Assembly (NCBI RefSeq): GCF_964188315.1
Contig: NC_135667.1
Span: 11,594,001-11,658,000 of the forward strand
Length of the DNA stretch: 64,000 bases
From: Podarcis muralis
Lineage: Eukaryota
Direction of reading: 5' to 3'
Each line of letters begins with the position of its first letter. The stretch's first letter is position 1. Shown in pieces: positions 7,910-64,000 of this stretch. The position numbers and the translations under genes were made by a program. The notes beneath the pieces were generated by a model. It did not search any database. It saw only the letters and a program-made list of their open reading frames with translations, and was not told the origin of the DNA.

Positions 7910-8093
7910 CAGCGGTTCCTAATTAGCTAAGTACTGTGGACCCCCTGTTTTTCAAAAGTCAAACATGGACCCCCTACTTTTGAAATTTTTGTTATATCTC
8001 TAGTAGTTTTTATTGTGCATATGGTGCCACTGACACCCTGTGTTGGCTATGCAGACCCCATGGGGTTTACAGACCACCAATTGGGAACCACTG
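7910..8093. mobile_element. Old hAT-like MITE
   Basis: Termini CAGCGGTTCC and GGAACCACTG; degenerate 8-bp flanks (5/8 match). Confidence 0.5.
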
Positions 8094-8560
8094 TCTTAGA
8101 TTAAGAAAAACTGAAAGTCATGTATTAAATCTGGAATTTTTTTCCATGAAGGACATCTGTTTTTATAACCACTCCTTTCCCCTAAAATCATATACTACAT
8201 ATAAAAATGAGTACATTATAGCTGAAATCTCTGGGGCCCATAAAGGTGACTTTAATGAGACTTTCACCTTCTCATCAAACAACCTTGTTCTTAGAGGAGA
8301 AACCACCACTTATATTCCCCCAAAACTTTATAGAAGTTGGAGGTAAAATATATTACCTCCCATTTTAAAATATTTTCTTCAAGATGTTTTAAAGATAAAA
8401 TTATATTGATGTTATCTATAAACAATGAGAACAACACGTCAAGCCATATTTTAAGCCTTCCCTCCTCCAGTACATTAATGACAACAAAATTGCTGAAGAA
8501 CACAGAGCTTACTAAAATAAATTGCATCATTTGGTATTGTCTTAAGATGACATTGTCCAC

Positions 8561-29859: not shown

Positions 29860-31756
29860 CTTTTTTTAAAAAAATATCTTTATTAATTTCAAATAAATAT
29901 ATTTATGAAAAACAGGTGTACATACAAGTAAACAAACATACAATCAAACAAACAAATAACAGAAAAATCAAACAAACCACCACACTATAAGATATAAGAA
30001 GATTAATATAATTATCATCATATATACTCTTGGTATTGAACACAATCATTAAATTTATAGAAAAGAAATTTAAAACTGACTTGCAATTAATCTCATTGTA
30101 CTTTGTCTATCCATTACTGTATATGGCACAGTTACATATTTCTTATATAATTTCTTTTTACCTCCCTACAAACTTATATTTATACAATGCAGGGATCAGT
30201 CTAATTCTGCCAAGATGTTTTCTTTTATTCCATAGTTTTCTAAATATTCTTTAAAGGTTCTCCAATCCTTATAGACTTTCGCTAGCTGCAGATATTCTAC
30301 CATTAGGATTTGCCAATCTTCTGTGTTGGTTATTGTTGTGTTTTTCCAATTTCTTGCTACTAAAATTCTGACCACCGTTATTCCGTACATGAACAATGTT
30401 CTTTTCGATTTCCCTATTTCTTTTGGCAAAATGCTTATAAATATTTTTTCTAGCCTCTTTTTGAATGTTAATTTAAATATTTTTTTAAGTTCTTCATATA
30501 TATTATTCCAAAAAACACAAATATCTGTACATTACCACCACATATGCAAAGAAGACCCAATTTCTTTATTACATCAACATATAGATGATCTGTTCTTATA
30601 CATTTTAGCAAGTTTTTCTGGAGTTTCGTGCCATCTATACATCATCTTCATTGTGTTTTCCCTGAGATTGTAGCAGGCCGCGAATTTTATGTCTTCCCGC
30701 CATACTTTTTCCCATTGTTCCATGTAAACATTATAGCCCAAATCTTGCACCCATCTCACCATTACAGCTTTCACTTGTTCTTCCTTTACCCCCCATTCCA
30801 ATAGAAGGTTGTATACCCGTGAGATATATTTTCCTTTACTTTGTATCAATTCTTTTTCAAATGTTGATGTTTCTTTTGCAAGTCCTGCTTTTTTATCAAT
30901 GGTTAATCTTTGATGCATTTAAAAATATTGCAGCCAGTCTGTTAGATACCCTTTATTTTCTTCATATTTTTTCAATATAGGTTCATCCTGTTGTCCTTCT
31001 AATAATAATCGGTATGTGGCCCATTCCCCATCCATATTCTTTTTCTTAACTGCCTGTGCTTCTGTAGGTGAGCTCCACGGGGGAATCCTGGGTTCTAGTA
31101 TTCCTTTATATTTTGACCAGATCTTATATAATGATTTCCTTATTAAATGGTTCAAGAAGCCCCTGTGGACCTTTACCTTCTCATATATTAAATAGGCATG
31201 CCACCCATACCAATTATCATATCCCTCCAAATCTAATACATCGAAATCCCTTAATGTTGAGGTAAAGGTAAAGGTACCCCTGCCAGTACGGGCCAGTCTT
31301 GACAGACTCTAGGGTTGTGCGCTCATCTCACTCTATAGGCCGGGGGCCAGCGCTGTCCGAAGACACTTCCGGGTCATGTGGCCAGCGTGACGAAGCTGCT
31401 CTGGCGAGCCAGTGCAGCACAGGGAAATGCCGTTTACCTTCCCGCTAGTAAGCGGCCCCTATTTATCTACTTGCACCTGGGGGTGCTTTCGAACTGCTAG
31501 GTTGGCAGGCGCTGGGACCGAGCAATGGGAGCGCACCCCTCCGCGGGGATTCGAACCGCCGACCATGTGATCAGCAAGTCCTAGTCGCTGAGGTTTTACC
31601 CACAGCGCCACCTGCGTCCCTCCCTTAATGTTATCCAATCTTTAATCCATAATAATGCTGCAGCTGCATGGTATAGCTCTAGATCAGGGAGCGCGAAGCC
31701 TCCTCTCTCTATTTTATTTGTTAACAGTTGGAATTTTATTCTCGGCTTTTTTTTCA
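29860..31756 (-). mobile_element. 5'-truncated, degraded L1 (ORF2 3' end plus 3' UTR) interrupted by a Sauria SINE
   Basis: Broken ORFs 30196-31230 align with the ORF2 C-terminus at 57440-58650; 11-bp TSD TTCTCTGAACT (29849-29859 and 31757-31767). Confidence 0.88.
31259..31620 (-). mobile_element. Sauria SINE
   Basis: Full head gggacgcaggtggcgctgtgggtaaaacc, (ACCTTT)n tail, 12-bp TSD TCCCTTAATGTT (31247-31258 and 31621-31632). Confidence 0.9.
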
Positions 31757-38758: not shown

Positions 38759-39076
38759 TTGTTCAAATATATAAAAGGATGTCATATAGAGGAGGGAGAA
38801 AGGTTGTTTTCTGCTGCTCCAGAGAAGCGGACACGGAGCAATGGATCCAAACTACAAGAAAGAAGATTCCACCTAAACATTAGGAAGAACTTCCTGACAG
38901 TAAGAGCTGTTCGACAGTGGAATTTGCTGCAAAGGAGTGTGGTGGAGTCTCCTTCTTTGGAGGTCTTTAAGCAGAGGCTTGACAACCATATGTCAGGAGT
39001 GCTCTGATGGTGTTTCCTGCTTGGCAGGGGGTTGGACCTGATGGCCCTTGTGGTCTATTCCAACTCTATGATTCTA
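38759..39076 (+). mobile_element. Young CR1 3' end in gene D intron 4
   Basis: Nearly identical to 56520-56840; ATTCTAT tail; gene C has the empty site at ~22405-22415. Confidence 0.9.
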
Positions 39077-42000
39077 TAAGCTGATTTAAAGGTTGTAGGT
39101 TGTGTTTTATATAATATTGGTTTATTGAGATTGTATTTGCATATGGTGTATGTTTTTAAGCCCCCAAGAGAGGACATTGCCTGATAGAGCAGTATAAAAA
39201 GGTATAAAGAAATAAGGAATGACAACAAAATGTTAGCAGGGCCTAACATGTATTACAGAAAATAGATGTTTCCTGTCATTACTTTATGTGAGATTTATGA
39301 GTCAAGCCTTCAGTTTGTAACATTCAATGAAATGCAAATCTAGTTTTAATCCATTTATAAGACTGAGTATAGAACTTTGAATCTTTCTGAGTTTGAATAC
39401 AGAAGGAATGTGCCCCCTGTGTACTATTGCTTAAAGCATGATAAATATCAGATGGAAGAAGAATTCTACAAACTAATTAATACTAAACTCTTCCCTTAAC
39501 TTTATTCAATGTTAAATTTCCAATATCTTTGGATAGGTGCCACCCCTTTCAGAATGTAATGGCATCTGCCAACCTGGTTATGGGAAGAAAAAGAAAGAAG
39601 GAGAGAAATTTTGCTGCTATGATTGTGCTCCATGTCCAGATGGGATGGTCTCAAACGAGAAGGGTAGGACATGCTATTTCATGGTAGACCAGATTGCCCA
39701 AGTTTCTGAAGTAATATATGAGAGGCTGTTTTGCAAGTTTGTTATAATTAACTTGGCACATTTTTTAAAATTATGTTGTTGTACATTGTTCTCAGTGTTC
39801 ATTTAGGCCCCCAGTTGTAACAAACTAGGCAAGTGGGGAAAGGATGGGGTGGGTTCAACCCAAAAAATATTCTTAGGAATATCTATTTCTAGCTATTTTT
39901 TCATTGTTAGCTCAGTACCTTCCTATCCAGGACTTAGTGTGGCCTGGTTTGATGGCTGGAGAACTTGGAGGATAATGAATTGTTATTTTGAAATCATTCA
40001 GACCAAGCAAGTGAGAGAAGAATCGTAACCCGAGGTACCACTGTAATTATATAAAAATCACTACGAACATTCGCATAAAGATTTTATGGCTTTAACAAGA
40101 GCACTGGTAAAAATGCCGGTATTATTTAGGATTAAAAAATAAGGGATCAGGATTTTCTAGTATTAAAACTTATTGGGCAATAGTAATACTCAGAATTGAC
40201 CCACTGAAATCAATTTATGTATTTATTTCATAAAATTTATAAACCACTTCATAATGGAAAACCTCTAATTGGTTGACAAGTTGCTTAAGTCTATTTATTT
40301 CAGTGGGACTACCTTGAGTATGATTTGGTGGGATGGCACTCATTATACAAACTGTAATTGCTGATTAATATATGGAATAAAGAACCTGTGGTATTTAAAA
40401 GCAGGCTATGAGGGAATGCTTGTACATCTAGGACACACATGCTGCTTCTGTTGAAAATTCCAGGTTATGTGTAGGATTTGTACGAATCTTGGTCAGAAAG
40501 GTATCAAAAATTGCATGATGAGCTATAATGTTTGGTGGACTGCTGCTGCTACAGATTTTAATATTCGGAACTATTCTGGTTCAATATTTTGTTAACTTCT
40601 TTTCAGATTTAGAAAATTGTGCAAGTTGTGCAAAGGATCTATACCCAAACAAAGGCCGGGATCTATGCATTCCTAAGATACCAAACTTCTTAGCTTTTGA
40701 TGATGTGCTGGCCATTGTTTCAACTTCCACTGCACTTTTATTGTCCCTGATCACAGCTCTGGTGCTGGGCATCTTCATTAAGCATCGGGATACAGCCATA
40801 GTCAAAGCCAACAACAGAAGCCTCACCTACATTCTCCTCATCTCCCTCCTCGTGTGTTTCCTCTGTTCTTTGTTGTTCATTGGAAAACCTAATAAGGTGA
40901 CCTGCCTTCTCCGACAAACCGCTTTTGGCATCGTCTTCTCTATGGCCCTCTCTAGCATCTTGGCCAAAACTATATCAGTGGTTTTGGCATTCATGGCTAC
41001 TAAGCCAGGATCCTCTATCAGGAAATGGGTGGGGGAAAGACTGGCTTACTCCATAGTCCTTTCCTGCTCTAAAACTCAAGTAGTGATATGTGCACTCTGG
41101 CTGACAATCTCTCCTCCATTCCCAGATTTGGACATGCACTCAATGAAGGAAGGAATTATATTTCTGTGTAATGAAGGGTCAGTCCTCATGTTTTACTGTG
41201 TCTTGGGCTATATGGGTTTCCTGGCCATTGTCAGCTTCACGGTGGCCTTCTTAGCCAGGAAGTTGCCTGACAGTTTCAATGAAGCCAAGTTCATCACCTT
41301 CAGCATGTTGGTCTTCTGCAGCGTTTGGCTCTCCTTTATTCCAACTTACCTGAGCACCAGAGGAAAATACATGGTGGCTGTGGAGATCTTCTCCATCCTG
41401 GCTTCCAGTGCTGGATTACTGGCTTGCATCTTTTCCCCTAAATGCTATATTATTGTGATGAGGCCTGAGTTAAACAACAGAGAGCAATTGATACGGAGGA
41501 AGATATAAATGACAGAAGTTTTTGTTGGGTCTTAGGCTACCTGGCCTTGCTGACAATTAACAGTCTCATTGCACCTTTCCTAGTCAGGAAGTTGAAAAAA
41601 ATATAAATAATAGAAGGATTCATCATATCATTTATGTCCTTGTTATTCCATATAGGAACATGTGTCTTTTATATGAATTGGGACTGTGTGAAGGAATGAA
41701 ACTGTGGATAAGATCCAATATCACTTTCATAAGACATTTGTAGCAGATCAGTCTAGGCAATGGAAAAATTCTGGAGAGCTTCAAAATCATCTACACATAG
41801 GGTGAACTAGTACACCCTAATTACATTTCTTATCTGAGTTAAAGACTGGTGACAGGGAGCTTCTTAACCATGTCAGATTGCCTCAGATCAGATGTGTTGT
41901 TTCTAAAGTGATAAGACAATATTATCCAGTGTCCCTACCTCCTAATAACATTAGAACTCTGTCCAGAATTGTTTCCAGTAAGCAGTTAGTATGATAGCAA

Positions 42001-52095: not shown

Positions 52096-52248
52096 NNNNN
52101 NNNNNNNNNNNNNNNNNNNNNNNNNNNNNNNNNNNNNNNNNNNNNNNNNNNNNNNNNNNNNNNNNNNNNNNNNNNNNNNNNNNNNNNNNNNNNNNNNNNN
52201 NNNNNNNNNNNNNNNNNNNNNNNNNNNNNNNNNNNNNNNNNNNNNNNN
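52096..52248. other. Assembly gap (153 N)
   Basis: Run of N. Confidence 1.
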
Positions 52249-56019: not shown

Positions 56020-56844
56020 AGAGAACTACCTTGACAGATTAGAGAACTGGGCCAAAACAAACAAGATGAACTTTAACAGGGAGAAATGTAAAGTATTGCA
56101 CTTGGGCAAAAAAAAATGAAAGGCACAAATACAAGATGGGGGACACCTGGCTTGAGAGCAGTACATGTGAAAAGGATCTAGGAATCTTGGTTGACCACAA
56201 ACTTGACATGAGCCAACAGTGTGACGCGGCAGCTAAAAAAGCCAATGCAATTCTGGGCTGCATCAATAGGAGTATAGCATCTAGATCAAGGGAAGTAATA
56301 GTGCCACTGTACTCTGCTCTGGTCAGACCTCACCTGGAGTACTGTGTCCAGTTCTGGGCACCACACTTCAAGAAGGACACTGACAAACTGGAACGTGTCC
56401 AGAGGAGGGCAACCAAAATGGTCAAAGGCCTGGAAACGATGCCTTATGAGGAACGGCTAAGGGAGCTGGGCATGTTTAGCCTGGAGAAGAGGAGGTTAAG
56501 GGGTGATATGATAGCCATGTTCAAATATATAAAAGGATGTCACATAGAGGAGGGAGAAAGGTTGTTTTCTGCTGCTCCAGAGAAGCGGACACGGAGCAAT
56601 GGATCCAAACTACAAGAAAGAAGATTCCGCCTAAACATTAGGAAGAACTTCCTGACAGTAAGAGCTGTTCGACAGTGGAATTTGCTGCCAAGGAGTGTTG
56701 TGGAGTCTCCGTCTTTGGAGGTCTTTAAGCAGAGGCTTGACAACCATATGTCAGGAGTGCTCTGATGGTGTTTCCTGCTTGGCAGGGGGTTGGACTCGAT
56801 GGCCCTTGTGGTCTCTTCCAACTCTATGATTCTATGATTCTATG
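56020..56844 (+). mobile_element. Young CR1 LINE 3' fragment
   Basis: ORF 56136..56765 ([12 protein letters not shown]...[13 protein letters not shown]) and an (ATTCTATG)n tail. Confidence 0.93.
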
Positions 56845-57439
56845 AATGTTTGATTTCCACCAAATAACTGTTCCCCAGTTCCATATAGAACATGGCTGGA
56901 AATTGCTTGAAGGGTAAAGAAGTAAGTACCATATTTTTTGCTCTATAAGACTCACTTTTTCCCTCCTAAAAAGTAAGGGGAAATGTGTGTGCGTCTTATG
57001 AAGCGAATGCAGGCTGCGCAGCTATCCCAGAAGCCAGAACAGGAAGAGGGATCGCTGCTTTCTTTTTTTTTTTTTTTTTGCATCATACTTTTTTATTGAG
57101 ATTATACAAAAAGAAAAAACACGGACAAAGAAAAAGGAGAGAAGGTAACAATAAGAATACATATAAATACTCAAAGTCCAACCTAAGTGTATCTTATGAT
57201 ACATTAACATATAGAGTATACTTTATTTACTTAAATTATTATTTCCCTTCCCTCGACTGTACAAAAAAACACACTGGTTTACCACATATTCCTGACAAAT
57301 CATATTATACTACACTCTTTCAGACCTGGGACTCCCCTCCACCCTTTTGGTAGGTATCAAACATGTTCCATACTCCCGTACTTATTTTGCACACATCAAA
57401 TTTAGTCACTAGTAAATTTTTCCTATCCCCACCAGTGCT

Positions 57440-60400
57440 TTATAGATTTGTTCCTATATAGTTCCAATATTTACTCCAATTTTTCTGAAATTTCTGTTCA
57501 TCTTGATCTCGAATTTTAACTGTTAACCTATCCAACTCGGCATAATTTATCATTTTGGCCTGCCAATCACTTAAACTGGGTATATTTTCCACTTTCCAAT
57601 TTTGCGCCAACATAATTCTTGCTGCGGTGGTGGCGTAGAGAAATATGGTCTTATCTTCTTTTTTAATCTCTTTGCCCATCAGTCCCAACAGAAAGGCTTC
57701 AGGTCTTTTGGGAAAGGTGTATTTAAATATTTTTTTAAGCTCATTATAAATAATTTCCCAAAAGCCTTTCACCTTGTTACAACGCCACCACATGTGATAA
57801 AGATTACCCTCCACCTCGCCACATTTCCAGCATTTGTTGTTCTGTAACCTATACATTTTGGCCAGCTTCACCGGTGTATGGTACCATCTATATAACATCT
57901 TCCAAATATTCTCTCTCAATGCCGTACAGGCCGTAAATTTTATGGTACTATTCCACAGTTCCGACCACCTTACAAAATCAATATTATACCCAAAGTCGAT
58001 AGCCCATTTAGTCATTGCCTCCTTAACCTCCTCATCTTTTGTCTGCCACTCCAATAAGATCTCATATATTTTAGACAATGTTTTGTTCTTGTTATCTATA
58101 ACCTCTACGTTAAATTTTGATTTTTTATCATCAAAGCCTAAACTCTTTTTGTCTTCTTTTAACAAATCATGCACTTGATGATATTGCAACCATCCCGTGA
58201 GTAGGCTTTGTATCTCTTCGTAGGGTCTAAGTTTGGGCCCTTGATCTGTTTTTCTTAGAAGATCTTCATATGTCGCATTGTTCCCTTCCATATTTAGTTT
58301 CTTAACCGTTAGAACCTCTATTGGTGAGATCCACCAGGGGGTTTTCCTTTCAAGGAGGTTTTTATTCCTTTCCCACACCTGGTAGATTGGTCCCCTGAAG
58401 ATATGGTTTAAGAAGCTCCTGTGTACCTTCACTTTCCCATACCACAGGTACGCGTGCCATCCGTACCTATTATCATAACCTTCCAGATCCAATATATCTC
58501 TGTTCTCTAGTTTTATCCAATCCTTTATCCAAAGTAGGCACGCTGATTCATAATATAAGCTCAAATCTGGAAGGGAAAAGCCCCCTCTTTCTTTTTTATC
58601 TGTTAGTATTTTCATTTTTATCCGTGGTCTTTTCCCTTGCCAGATGTATTTCGCTAAGGCTCTTTGCCACTCTTTACACTGTTTTATACCTTTAAGTATT
58701 GGGATAGTTTGAAACAGGAACAACATTCTGGGTAAAATATTCATTTTTACTACTGCTATCCTTCCTAAAAAGGAGAGTTTCAGTCTTCCCCAGATTTCCA
58801 TATCTTTCTTTATATTCTTCCAGGTGGCCTCATAATTGTCCTTGTAAAGATTTAAGTTTTTAGCCGTAATCCAAATTCCTAAATATTTCACTTTCTTAAC
58901 TGCCGTGATTCCTACCCTTTGTTCTAGATCAATCGTTTCCTCCTTTGTTAAATTTTTAACCAACATTTTGGTTTTATCTTTATTTACCTTGAGCCCTGCA
59001 ACCGCTCCGAATTCTTCAATTATTTGTAAAGCTTCTTTAGTACTCTTCTGTGGATCTTCTAGGGTTAATACAATGTCGTCTGCAAAAGCTTTTATTTTGA
59101 ATTCTCTCTTTCCTACCCTGACCCCTTTGACTTCTGTAGCCTCCCTTAATCTTTCATTAAGTATCTCCAATACTGTTATAAATAATAAAGGAGACAGGGG
59201 GCAGCCTTGTCTCGTTCCTTTATATATACTGAAGTAATCTGTTGTAGTGCTATTTATTACCAATTTTGCCTTTTGTTCCTTATATATTGCTTCTATGCCT
59301 CTCCTAAATTTTTCTCCCATTCCCATTCCTTCCAGGCTTTTGCTTAGGAAGTCCCACGAGATGTTATCAAATGCCTTTTCGGCATCTACAAATATTAAGG
59401 CCGCCTGTCTATCTATTTTCATGTCCAAGTATTCAATAATATTTATCAAATTCCTCACATTTTCCCTTAGTTGCCTCCCTGGAAGGAAGCCTGTTTGGTC
59501 TTTATGTATTCTCTTATTTAGTACCTTTTTCAATCTTTCTGCCATTACAGCTGCAAATATTTTATAATCGTTATTTAATAATGAAATTGGCCTGTAGTTC
59601 TTGACGTCCAAAGTATCAACATCTTTTTTTGGGATTAACGTAATATATGCTTCCTTCCAGGTATTGGGGATCCTTCCTTCTTTTAGTATATTATTCATCA
59701 CCTCACCTAACACTGGGGATAGTTGGTTGCTTAGTATTTTATAGTATTTTGCCGGAAGGCCATCCGGCCCCGGCGCTTTCCCACTTTTCATCTTTCTAAT
59801 AGCTTTCTCTATCTCCTCTTGTGTAATTGCCTGATCCAGTGTCTCTTTTTCTTCATTTAAAATTGGTTTTAAATGATATTTTTGCAAGAAGCTGTCTATT
59901 TCTTGTTCTGTTTCTTTTCCTTTTTTATATAAATCCTTGTAAAATTTTTGGAATATCCTTTTTATTTCTTTTGGTTCTTCCACAATTCTTTCTCCCTCTC
60001 TTATCTTGTTGATAGTATTTTGTTTCCTCCTTTCTCTTATTTGCCACGCCAAATACTTGCCTATCTTATTTGCTGACTCAAAGTTTTTCTGGTTCATCAT
60101 TTTAATTTTCCATTCTATTTCTTGATTAATTATCATGGAAAATTTGGCTTGTAATATCTTTAAATTCTGTTTTGCGGTCTCATCACTAGGGTTGTCAATT
60201 AATTTTCTTTCATTTTCCATAATTTGTGTTAGGACCTGTTCTTTCTTTGACTCCTTTTCTTTCCTTAATTGGCTATTTTTCTGAATCAAGAACCCCCTCA
60301 TCACAGCCTTTCCTGCGTCCCATACCGTCCCTATTTCAGTTTCCCCATTTAGGTTCCATCTAAAGTAATCATTTATAGTTTCTATAGCCTTATTTACAAT

Positions 60401-60720
60401 CTTCTGATCATTAAATAAAAATTCATTCATTCTCCATCTTCCTGTTTTGAAGTCTTTACCCCTTAATTCCATGAAGACCGCATTATGGTCAGAGATAGTT
60501 CGTGGGAGAATCTCAGACTTAACTAAATTCTGTATCAATTCCTTCGATATCCAAATATTATCTATTCTCCCCCAACTCTGATTTGGGTTTGAGAAAAAAG
60601 TATATTGTTTTGTCATGGGGTTTTTATATCTCCATGCATCGTTTAGTCCCAGGTTATTTACCATATCAAAAAAAGATCGAGGTAGCTTGCCTTGGTTCTT
60701 CTCCTGGGATTTTGTTAATC
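57440..60720 (-). CDS. L1 ORF2, C-terminal ~1090 aa (endonuclease C-half, RT, CCHC knuckle), uninterrupted
   Basis: GRIDNIW, TISDHNAV, KAPGPDG, YRPISLLNNDYK, GTRQGCPLSPLLF, AFADD, KYLGI, CWKC...HMWWRC. Confidence 0.92.
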
Positions 60721-61598
60721 TGGAGACTTCCGGGATGCCGCGGCCGCGGGAAGGAGCGCGAGGCAACCCTCCGGGGAGGTCTCGAACAATACGGAGTCTT
60801 GGAGGGGTCACGAGGGCTCCGTGAACCCCGAAACCACAGGTGGAATATCCTGTGGGACGAGGTACCCAGCGTGGCTGCGTGTGCTCGCCTGTGTTGCCGG
60901 CGTTTAACAGGGCTGGAGCCGCAGCGTGAAGGGGAAGCAACAGACTCCATATTGTGAAGCCTCAGGCTCCAAGGGAAAGCGGCGGACCTCCAACAGCAGC
61001 AGAAAAGCTGGGAAATAGCTACTGGCCACTGCGGAGAAGCAGTGGGTAATAATTGGATAATATTGAGAAACAAAGGAGCAAAGACTAGAAAGATACTTTG
61101 TGATAAGAACCCAGCAGAGACCAGATATAAGTTGAAAGGAGGAGGAATCCACCACCGGCGGTAAGGGGTAAAGAGAGTACAACAGAAGGCTGGTGGAGAA
61201 GAAAAGATCTGAAACTTCACCGCTAAGTGAGAGTGGAGGAGAGACCTCAGACACGAAGTACAAGGAGTCAGAGGTAAAGTAACAACGAGATTTCTTGATG
61301 GACTAAATTATAGAGAAAAGAGAAGGAACACCCCTAACATACTGGGACGGAGAATGCTATAACAGGTTGGGGGGGTTCCACAGACACACCTTTTGTTCTT
61401 AACTGCTCATAGTTGGACACAAACTTTCTTAAGGCGGTGTACAGGAGGGGAGCACTTTATCGGCTGAGCGGAACCCAGGCTTTCATTCTAAATCCTAATA
61501 TTAATCACGTAGGGGCAAAGGACAGAAACTGCGTAAGGAAAGTTTTTGTTTGGAATCTCTACGTGAGCGCTCTGCTGGAAGAAGCAGGGGAGGAAACA

Positions 61599-61864
61599 AA
61601 ACGGCTTGGGGTTTAGTTTTGGTACTCTGCTTTACAGCGTCCTTGATTTAAATGGAGTAACGCCTTTGTTCTTTACCTCTATGATTTAAAGAGACATACC
61701 AAATTTCCGCTATATTGCGTTTGCAGGGGAAGAAGCAAACGGCTTGGGACTTAGTTTTGGTACTCTGCTTTATAGCGTCCTTGATTCAAATGGAGTAACG
61801 CCTTTGGTTTTTACCTCTATGATTTAAAGAGACATACCAAACTTCCGCTATATAGCGTTTGCAT
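61599..61864 (+). repeat. 138-bp tandem duplication in the L1 5' UTR
   Basis: Units start at 61599 and 61737; partial third copy at ~61901-61922. Confidence 0.85.
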
Positions 61865-62239
61865 TTGAAATTGAATAATGCCTCTGTCCTCCACTGATAG
61901 GATTTAAAGAGACATACCAAACCTTATACCAAACCTTTGAATAAGGGAAAACTGGGGAGGACTGAACCCAGCTTTCAACTTAAATAGAACACGTTTTTGC
62001 AGGAGTCTATTGTTTTGTTTGAACGTACCATTTTGCCTTTGTGGCTTGAGGTCCTCACTACATTTTCACTCCCAAGAAATTAAAGACTAAAGTACGGGTT
62101 ACCATTTAGTGGTAGTTCTACTCTAACACCACCTCCTCCACTCTATTGACTAAGTAGCTAAATCGTGGGTAAAGACTGTCTGATATCTGGTTAACTAATC
62201 TTCTTGGAGTTAAAAGAGAAGCAACCCCAAGCAGACAAG

Positions 62240-63145
62240 ATGCCAAATGGATCGAAAAAGGGTTTGGCAACACCAGCGGAAAGGAGGCCATCAAGACAAG
62301 AAGAAGGCAAAGATACAAGGGAAATTAGAGACTATGATACCTTGATGGCAGAAATAAGAAAAGAATTTAAAAATAATGAACAATATATTGAAAAAAAGTT
62401 AATAGAAGTACAAAACATCATAGATAAGAAACTGGAGGGGGTGGTGGGAGAATTGACAGGAAAGGTTAAGGACCTATCGGTAAGAGCAAAAGCCCTTGAG
62501 GACTCAATGAAAAGGGTGCAAAAAGATACGAAAGATAGTAAGAAGGAAGTGGACAGGATGAGAGTAGAAATTAAGGAATTAGGAAAGATACAGGAAGAAT
62601 TGTTGGACAACATGGCTATGACACAGATGAGACAAAACCAAGCCAATTTGAAATTTAGAGGTATACCGGAAAAGCTAAATGAGAATATCAGGACTAAAGT
62701 GGTGAAAGAATTGGCAATTTGGTTAGGCAGGAAGGAAGAAGAGATAAATCATCACTTGATAAACACCTTCCGAATAAGAGCAAAATCAGCTAAAGCCAAA
62801 GAAAAAAAATTGCCAGGAGATGTAATAGCCATGTTTAACTCTTTTGAGATAAGAAATGAAATACTGAAACAAAACTTTATCAAAAGGTTATATATTGAGG
62901 GAAACCTAATTATTATCTTTAAAGAGATTCCTTCGAGATTTCTTCGAAGGAGAGAGCCTTATAAAAAATTAACAAACCAATTGAAAAAAAACGGGATATT
63001 GTATAGATGGGAGTTCCCGGAAGGTATTTCATTTTATTTTAAGGAAAAAAGGTTCAAACTGTCCACTACTCTAGAACTGCAAAAATTTGCAAGGAGATAT
63101 GAGAAGGATTTGGGAAAGATGATGGGGGGGGGGGGGAAGAGGTAG
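62240..63145 (+). CDS. L1 ORF1-like protein (coiled coil, RRM, CTD)
   Basis: ATG at 62240; heptad-rich region; NLKFRGIPEK and YRWEFPEGISF resemble L1 ORF1p; lies upstream of ORF2. Confidence 0.8.
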   Translation: MPNGSKKGLATPAERRPSRQEEGKDTREIRDYDTLMAEIRKEFKNNEQYIEKKLIEVQNIIDKKLEGVVGELTGKVKDLSVRAKALEDSMKRVQKDTKDSKKEVDRMRVEIKELGKIQEELLDNMAMTQMRQNQANLKFRGIPEKLNENIRTKVVKELAIWLGRKEEEINHHLINTFRIRAKSAKAKEKKLPGDVIAMFNSFEIRNEILKQNFIKRLYIEGNLIIIFKEIPSRFLRRREPYKKLTNQLKKNGILYRWEFPEGISFYFKEKRFKLSTTLELQKFARRYEKDLGKMMGGGGKR

Positions 63146-63287
63146 AGGAGCAGCAAGGGGAGGAGGGGGAGGGTGAAAGGAGTGAAGAAGAAGAAAGAAG
63201 GGAGAGCTCAGTAGAGGAAAAGGAAGAAGCAGAAGAAAGAGAACAGTAGATTCTATCGAGATTTGAGAAGCCAAAACTAGTCAACAG

Positions 63288-63727
63288 ATGACCTTAAAAA
63301 TACTAAACTGGAATGTGAATGGGTTGAACAATAAAAATAAAAGGAATCAGATTGTACATATATTATTAAAAAAGAATTGTGACCTAATTTGCCTACAAGA
63401 GACTCATGTAGCGAACAAACATAAGAGGGTATTGAAGAACAAGAAACTAGGAATGGATTTTGTAGCTTCGGATAAGGTTAAAAAAAGAGGGGTGGTTATA
63501 TATATAAAGGAAAAACTCAATCCACAGTTATTGTACAAAGACGAAGAAGGAAGATTGATAGTAGTTCAGATGGTGTTTCATGGAGAAAAAATAATAGTAG
63601 TTGGAATATATGTACCAAATGACAAAAAGTCAGCTTTCTATTTAGAGTTAGACAACATGTTGATGGAGTGGATGGATCAAAAAATAATATTGATGGGAGA
63701 CTTTAATGGGGTGGTTTCCCCAAATTT
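63288..63727 (+). CDS. L1 ORF2 N-terminus (APE endonuclease N-half), cut at the inversion point
   Basis: LKILNWNVNGL, LICLQETH, IYVPN, MGDFNG; homology ends at VVSPNL and the ORF runs on into MITE sequence. Confidence 0.9.
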
Positions 63728-64000
63728 AGAGGGATCGCTGCTTTCGCTATGCAGTAATCCCTCTTGCTGTTCTGGGTTCTGAGATTCAGAATATTTTTTT
63801 TCTTGTTTCCACCCTCCAAAAACTAGGTGCGTCTTATGGTCTGGTGCGTCTTATAGAGCGAAAAATATGGTATTGCGTGTCGAGGTCCCCAGGGCCACCC
63901 CAATAACTCACACTTCACACAGAAATTTTTGTTTAAGGTTTTTGGCATAATTTTGGCCACAACTTTATTAAAATACAAAAATGTGAGTGGTTGCTTAGGC

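Follow-up and report, generated by a model that had tools for sequence, protein, structure and literature searches.

We examined a stretch of 64,000 nucleotides of the Podarcis muralis genome (assembly GCF_964188315.1, contig NC_135667.1, positions 11,594,001 to 11,658,000 of the forward strand; hereafter the window). It contains, at positions 57045-63745, a single long interspersed element 1 (L1) of 6.7 kb whose first 3.0 kb are inverted. The original prediction, made from the letters of this DNA, had proposed an arrangement in which a target site duplication (TSD) is followed by a T17 run, the 3' untranslated region (3'UTR), the C-terminal part of the second open reading frame (ORF2), a junction, the 5'UTR, ORF1, the N-terminal part of ORF2 and the second TSD copy. 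This layout is borne out at nucleotide resolution, and the element and its target comprise the following features:

56927..57058, no strand: left arm of the palindromic host repeat (inverted-repeat pairs I1 and I2)
57045..57062, no strand: left TSD copy, AGAGGGATCGCTGCTTTC, identical to 63728-63745; its 3' end, ..TTTC, is the proposed primer of the first complementary DNA (cDNA)
57063..57079, minus strand: poly(A) tail; the plus strand here reads as an unbroken run of 17 T (T17) that separates the TSD from the 3'UTR
57080..57439, minus strand: L1 3'UTR, 360 nt, between the ORF2 stop (57440-57442) and the tail, aligning partly to the P. muralis relatives L001 and L002
57440..60721, minus strand: ORF2 from R149 to the stop (endonuclease end, reverse transcriptase and C-terminal domain), the putative non-inverted, poly(A)-primed cDNA, with an open frame, an RVT_1 domain and an alignment to the collinear ORF2 protein P0002
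60722..60724, no strand: GGA, three bases at the inversion junction that differ from both the collinear continuation and the L002 5' terminus
60725..62239, plus strand: L1 5'UTR from its first base; homology to a TSD-flanked relative begins at 60725
62240..63145, plus strand: ORF1, 301 aa from its ATG, open, with a G13 run near its end
63288..63730, plus strand: ORF2 codons 1-147 and GA, the start of codon 148, coding for the N-terminal part of the endonuclease (Exo_endo_phos), the end of the putative inverted, internally primed cDNA
63728..63745, no strand: right TSD copy, whose first bases, AGA (63728-63730), are common to the TSD and the L1
63751..63872, no strand: right arm of the palindromic host repeat, from inverted-repeat analysis, with a word depth above 1e5 in the bin 63610-63800

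The minus-strand segment is the 3' 3.64 kb of the L1, running from codon 149 of ORF2 through the 3'UTR to the tail, and the plus-strand segment is the 5' 3.0 kb, consisting of the 5'UTR, ORF1 and codons 1-147 of ORF2. One TSD pair brackets both of them. The left TSD copy is followed directly by the T17 run, the poly(A) tail of the poly(A)-proximal segment, which thus adjoins this copy; the right copy is adjoined by an internal position of the L1. As had been claimed, the 18-bp TSD is perfect: the two copies are identical at 18 of 18 positions, the 18-mer is found at just these two sites when both strands of the window are considered, and the bases immediately outside them mismatch. A poly(A) tail (A17) and a TSD in the 10-20 bp range are the ends expected of an L1-clade long interspersed element. 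Two adjacent independent insertions were considered as a source of the opposed segments and rejected, because the plus-strand part has neither a tail nor a TSD of its own.

The coding content is likewise that of an L1. The minus-strand ORF is open from the junction (60721) to its stop at 57440 and contains the Pfam domain RVT_1 (E 3.8e-43), and the plus-strand ORF from 63288 contains the N-terminal two thirds of Exo_endo_phos (E 6.5e-15). Jointly, the two parts correspond to residues 1-147 and 149-1241 of P0002, a collinear protein of 1241 aa, as expected for an L1-clade ORF2; the C-terminal part aligns to it without gaps at 81% identity. ORF2 has hundreds of squamate L1 relatives, the best of which, at 85% identity, is from P. 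muralis. For ORF1, no Pfam family scores above the cut-off, and its relatives at 48-67% identity are named by their sources as 'L1 transposable element RRM domain-containing protein'. A predicted protein of P. muralis is identical to ORF1 at 296 of 298 positions (99%). Exact-protein look-ups gave no record for the ORF1 of the element, for this 99%-identical P. muralis ORF1 or for a 164-aa ORF lying across the right L1/TSD junction. No further copy of the L1 family is present within the 64-kb window. The only related sequence there is an L1 fragment at 30456-31242, which is 63% identical to the ORF2 3' part of the element and belongs to a distinct, distant L1 family.

The inner breakpoints were defined by alignment to uninverted copies of the same family, represented by contigs from four public P. 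muralis runs (X1, X2, X13 and X15) aligned over 57810-63800. Collinear family contigs in X1, X2 and X13 link 63730 to 60721 on opposite strands, and all listed family contigs stop or turn at 60721. Exactly one letter lies between the 63730 side and the 60721 side in a 900-nt contig of X13 (record 12). In X15, the loose end behind 60721 is ATCTAAATTTGGGGA, with the collinear reading ..TTTAGA-T-AGATTAAC... The family reads collinearly ..CCAAATTTAGA-T-AGATTAACAAAA.., which translates as S P N L D R L T K, and more distant collinear relatives agree (GATAGATTAACAAAA, with GAT AGA TTA ACA). Across the site that became the right L1/TSD boundary, where we place internal priming, the collinear family sequence is ..TTTAGATAGATTAAC...

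In the inverted copy, the plus-strand part ends ..CCAAATTT and then AGA, and the minus-strand part starts AGATTAACA. Measured against collinear contigs of the family and collinear relatives, the segments follow one another on the L1 with a gap of 1 nt (T). The proposal that they are neighbouring parts of the endonuclease with almost nothing missing is therefore upheld: with AGA assigned to the L1, a single base is absent, the T of codon D148, and with AGA assigned to the target, 4 nt are absent. The junction had been placed at about 60722 with a minus-strand part beginning SRLTK. The position was close, the inversion junction being exactly 60721|60722, but the S is derived from GGA, and the L1-derived part of this segment begins with R149. 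The suggested microhomology, TTT|AGA, is also real, since family contigs read ..CCAAATTTAGA-T-AGATTAACA.. at this site. AGA at 63728-63730 is where the target overhang, at its end, matches the L1 RNA over 3 nt at the internal site; at least three matching bases are expected by chance with a probability of about 1/64.

At its other end, the inverted segment can be compared with the collinear relative L002, which is flanked by the TSD AAATGGAAGCAAG, one copy preceding its first base and the other following its tail. L002 starts GACTTCCGGGA.., aligned to window position 60725; its first bases, GACTTCCGGGACGCCGCGGCC, align from 60725 and nothing upstream aligns, this relative being only about 77% identical. 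A family contig of 906 nt in X13 starts 2 nt before 60725. Because the TSD-flanked relative starts at 60725 and the X13 contig only 2 nt earlier, these alignments support an inverted cDNA that reached the 5' terminus of the L1, as the original prediction had proposed. A search with an antisense ORF of the 5'UTR for the 5' ends of other copies gave no matches. The GGA at 60722-60724 differs both from the collinear continuation, in which an A is expected from the missing T, and from the L002 5' terminus. Extra 5' bases are often seen on full-length L1 copies, and GGA may represent such extra 5' nucleotides of the L1 or a joining filler.

In keeping with a complete 5' end, a CpG island starts at the junction, where the first 239 bases (60722-60960) have a GC content of 0.63 and an observed/expected CpG ratio of 0.91; the rest of the element is CpG-poor. 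The start of the 5'UTR within this island (60725-60960) contains ACTTCCGG. Further into the 5'UTR, Tandem Repeats Finder reports a 138-bp unit repeated twice at 61584-61863 with 92% identity. With a third, degenerate partial unit, the array extends over 61584-61922, and the 5'UTR recalls the monomeric 5'UTRs of other L1s. L002 was itself inserted in the ORF2 3' region of an older L1 (L002 positions 7926-8112 and 15066 onward), with the TSD AAATGGAAGCAAG and a canonical nick, TTTT/G.

We found no inverted repeat with arms at both breakpoints. The closest pair, I11 (22 nt, 77%), is placed about 100 bp inward of each breakpoint and predicts different junctions. Inverted repeats at both breakpoints had been named in advance as the sign of recombination after insertion; with none at the breakpoints of this element, recombination is not indicated, and recombination between inverted repeats was rejected. 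A post-insertion inversion could also have arisen from a collinear full-length L1 by two breaks and end joining, with the segment from codon 148 to the 5' end flipped later by this route or by recombination. The final arrangement is formally equal to a collinear insertion with a segment flipped, and GGA could be an end-joining scar. However, one break would have had to fall by chance within about 3 bp of the L1/TSD boundary, for which we estimate roughly 1 in 1000 or less in a 6.7-kb element. In addition, both TSD copies are intact and the AGA microhomology is placed where twin priming predicts it. We regard a later inversion as highly improbable.

The L1 was inserted into a palindromic host repeat, the arms of which pair as 57024-57058 with 63751-63785 and as 56927-56955 with 63844-63872. 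In the last bin analyzed (63610-63800), which holds the right arm, word depth exceeds 1e5 in each DNA run, about 1000 times that of the L1. Loose ends of run contigs reveal paralogous copies of the host repeat in which a single AAGAGGGATYGCTGCTTTC is followed by about 11 nt and then by the right arm; having one 18-mer, these copies show the arrangement expected of the empty site. A BLAST search of the window with the joined flanks for such empty-site paralogues returned just the repeat's own arms and unrelated pieces. An Rfam search of the element and its flanks yielded no meaningful match, and none for the host repeat; its one sub-threshold match, to a bacterial small RNA, is a chance match. 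Just upstream of the L1 lies an ATG-started ORF of 209 aa (56136-56765). A stretch of 135 bases (56701-56835), which overlaps the 3' end of this ORF and runs on downstream, recurs at 38943-39077 with 97% identity.

Relative to the main contigs of its family, the divergence of the copy is roughly 0.5-1.5% within ORF2 and 2.5-4% within the 5'UTR. Because this divergence is low, the sequence points to a fairly recent insertion of a young lacertid L1. The original prediction had argued for a young insertion from the open ORFs. The frame is open in both parts of ORF2, next to a perfect TSD and a pure tail. ORF1 is open as well but ends early. It stops about 20 or more codons before the 99%-identical P. 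muralis protein, which continues into a longer acidic tail (321 aa). The early end arises because the G13 run near the end of ORF1 (about 63124-63136) is longer than in other family copies, which have 4-5 fewer G, so that the frame is shifted. This difference may be real or may reflect an assembly error in the homopolymer. Essentially the whole L1 sequence is present in the copy, which nevertheless cannot encode the ORF2 protein, because ORF2 is split in codon 148 across two strands, and it is dead as an autonomous element. In X13, a run labelled RNA, contigs extend over the whole family sequence 57810-63730, including the first base of the 5'UTR and the collinear endonuclease joint. The L1 family may therefore be transcribed, with DNA carry-over in X13 also possible.

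We consider one retrotransposition event, with twin priming on a single RNA molecule, very probably the best explanation of this locus. Twin priming was reportedly put forward by Ostertag and Kazazian in 2001 for 5'-inverted human L1 insertions, and the order of events and the enzymes proposed here follow by analogy from the established mammalian model. The L1 endonuclease would have nicked the plus strand at ..GCTTTC^GCTAT, a site (TTTC^GCTAT) that falls in the 9-nt apical loop of the host repeat. The resulting TTTC-3'OH would have primed the first cDNA on the poly(A) tail. The other strand would then have been cut 18 bp away, before the first cDNA passed L1 position ~3007. The freed end, ..CCCTCT-3' (..GATCCCTCT-3'), would have annealed by 3 nt to AGA in the endonuclease-coding region of the same RNA and primed a second cDNA, which would have extended over 3.0 kb as far as the extreme 5' end of the RNA. 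Extension from the annealed primer predicts exactly the TSD-AAATTTGGGG.. junction that is observed. The first cDNA would have run 3.64 kb and stopped when it came to the next AGA, with one base left between it and the annealed second primer, after which the two cDNA ends would have been joined with the three extra bases GGA.

As expected under this model, the architecture and segment order, the TSD pair, the tail, the 3-nt microhomology, the 1-nt gap, the complete 5' terminus and the absence of inverted repeats are all found in the copy. Every prediction of twin priming that can be tested in the sequence is thus supported, and the original reading of the element as a twin-primed insertion stands. 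A variant of the model would involve two RNA templates, with each nick primed on a different L1 RNA, one at the poly(A) tail and the other at an internal site. Such a variant would yield the same pattern of orientation and the same TSD, and the contigs of the RNA-labelled run suggest that transcripts of the family could have been available. With two templates, however, it would be unexplained why the first cDNA ends just one base away from the second priming site, and both segments are similarly little diverged from the family contigs. We therefore judge a second template extremely improbable.

Several points weigh against twin priming at this locus. The site of the first nick, TTTC/G, is T-rich but differs from the canonical TTTT/A. 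The GGA at the junction is unexplained. A query of 70 bases across 60721|60722 gave no listed match in the public runs, and no contig listed for the four runs bridges 60721|60722 or either L1/TSD junction. These runs are small and take the form of contigs, which represent the collinear, multi-copy form and lose variants present only once, so that this outcome carries no weight as a negative result. The mechanism itself is beyond proof from sequence, and the inverted arrangement is supported in the animal by how consistently its junctions fit together.

An assembly artefact was also considered, in which the real locus would be an ordinary full-length L1, collinear and on the minus strand, with its 5' 3 kb flipped during assembly. 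Besides the absence of the junction from the public runs queried, such an error would be in keeping with an L1 family that is multi-copy and collinear elsewhere, and about 5 kb upstream of the element the assembly has a gap (52096-52248, 153 N). An accidental flip, however, would need a breakpoint exactly at the boundary between the L1 5' end and the TSD. It must also leave a clean 1-nt gap, a 3-nt microhomology and three extra bases, and the element lies within continuous sequence with no inverted repeats to confuse an assembler. On balance, we find misassembly very unlikely and retain twin priming as the preferred explanation.

The 5'-inverted L1 insertions of human and chimpanzee have been surveyed in detail (PMC2912911, PMC12016303, PMC8219666), and the copies among them attributed to twin priming likewise have one TSD pair of 10-20 bp, a sense 3' part and an inverted 5' part. 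They also share with the lizard copy a microhomology of 2-5 bp between the inverted part and the TSD and a small gap or overlap. Among human 5'-inverted L1s, microhomology is present at the 5' junction in about 95% and measures 2-5 bp in about 70% (PMC2912911), the gap or overlap between the two cDNAs is within 20 bp in 46% (PMC12016303), and 5' inversions accompany TSDs of 10-20 bp (PMC4245944). The P. muralis copy differs from the human and chimpanzee cases in its lacertid host, its own L1 lineage and its nick at TTTC/G. It differs from the human cases also in length. In human germline polymorphisms, the median is 751 bp for the inverted and 571 bp for the non-inverted part, and breakpoints cluster in the L1 3' part (PMC12016303). 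In contrast, both lizard cDNAs (3.0 and 3.6 kb) are longer than 3 kb, with the inverted one extending to L1 base 1, so that two cDNAs covering the whole RNA place this copy at the far end of the human length range.

Closer comparisons are provided by collinear, full-length L1 copies of P. muralis itself that belong to the same lineage (L002 in GCA_964188315.1 and the Logan contigs L001 and L003). These have the same gene order, an equivalent ORF2 length of 1241 aa, the same 5' terminal motif GACTTCCGGGAYGCCGCGGCC, a tail and a TSD. They differ in being collinear and, with a DNA identity of 77-80%, represent related families rather than the same family. In Anolis carolinensis, L1s are about 5-6.8 kb long, with many complete insertions and others that truncate within 1 kb (PMC5389967). 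This pattern of truncating early or completing the copy fits a reverse transcription able to finish a second cDNA of 3 kb. The Anolis study describes only 5' truncation (PMC5389967), whereas the copy described here is 5'-inverted.

Experimental work on LINE insertions in chicken DT40 and human cells found 5' inversion just for human L1 in human cells and for a single insert of Nimb-2_DR in DT40, and human L1 in DT40 cells gave no 5' inversion (PMC4245944). According to that study, 5' inversion depends on both the host and the LINE species, and its model has the target duplex separating before completion of the first cDNA (PMC4245944). Compared with the DT40 experiments, the P. muralis copy is a natural sauropsid case. 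Within the literature that could be searched, we found no paper on twin priming in a lizard. Twin priming in lacertid L1s might be common and often complete, giving rise to a distinct class of dead copies that are complete but inverted. Two considerations would favour such a class: squamate L1 reverse transcription rarely stops past the first kilobase, and palindromic or hairpin targets, of which the host repeat nicked here in its apical loop is an example, may promote early strand separation and early second priming far from the 3' end. We nevertheless consider its existence doubtful.

Twin priming is known from mammals, and the mechanism is not new; the element is a new instance of it. To our knowledge, twin priming has been characterized almost solely for mammalian L1, and what sets the present copy apart is that it is very clean, unusually complete and in a non-mammalian host. 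Because nothing else is missing, the copy would record the start and the stop of both cDNAs. As a naturally occurring lizard copy, it indicates that the same product arises in a sauropsid that has an L1 lineage of its own, with all of the junction signatures and one base missing. The model is left unchanged, and the copy would serve as a useful point of reference for counting inverted and collinear L1 copies across lizard genomes.

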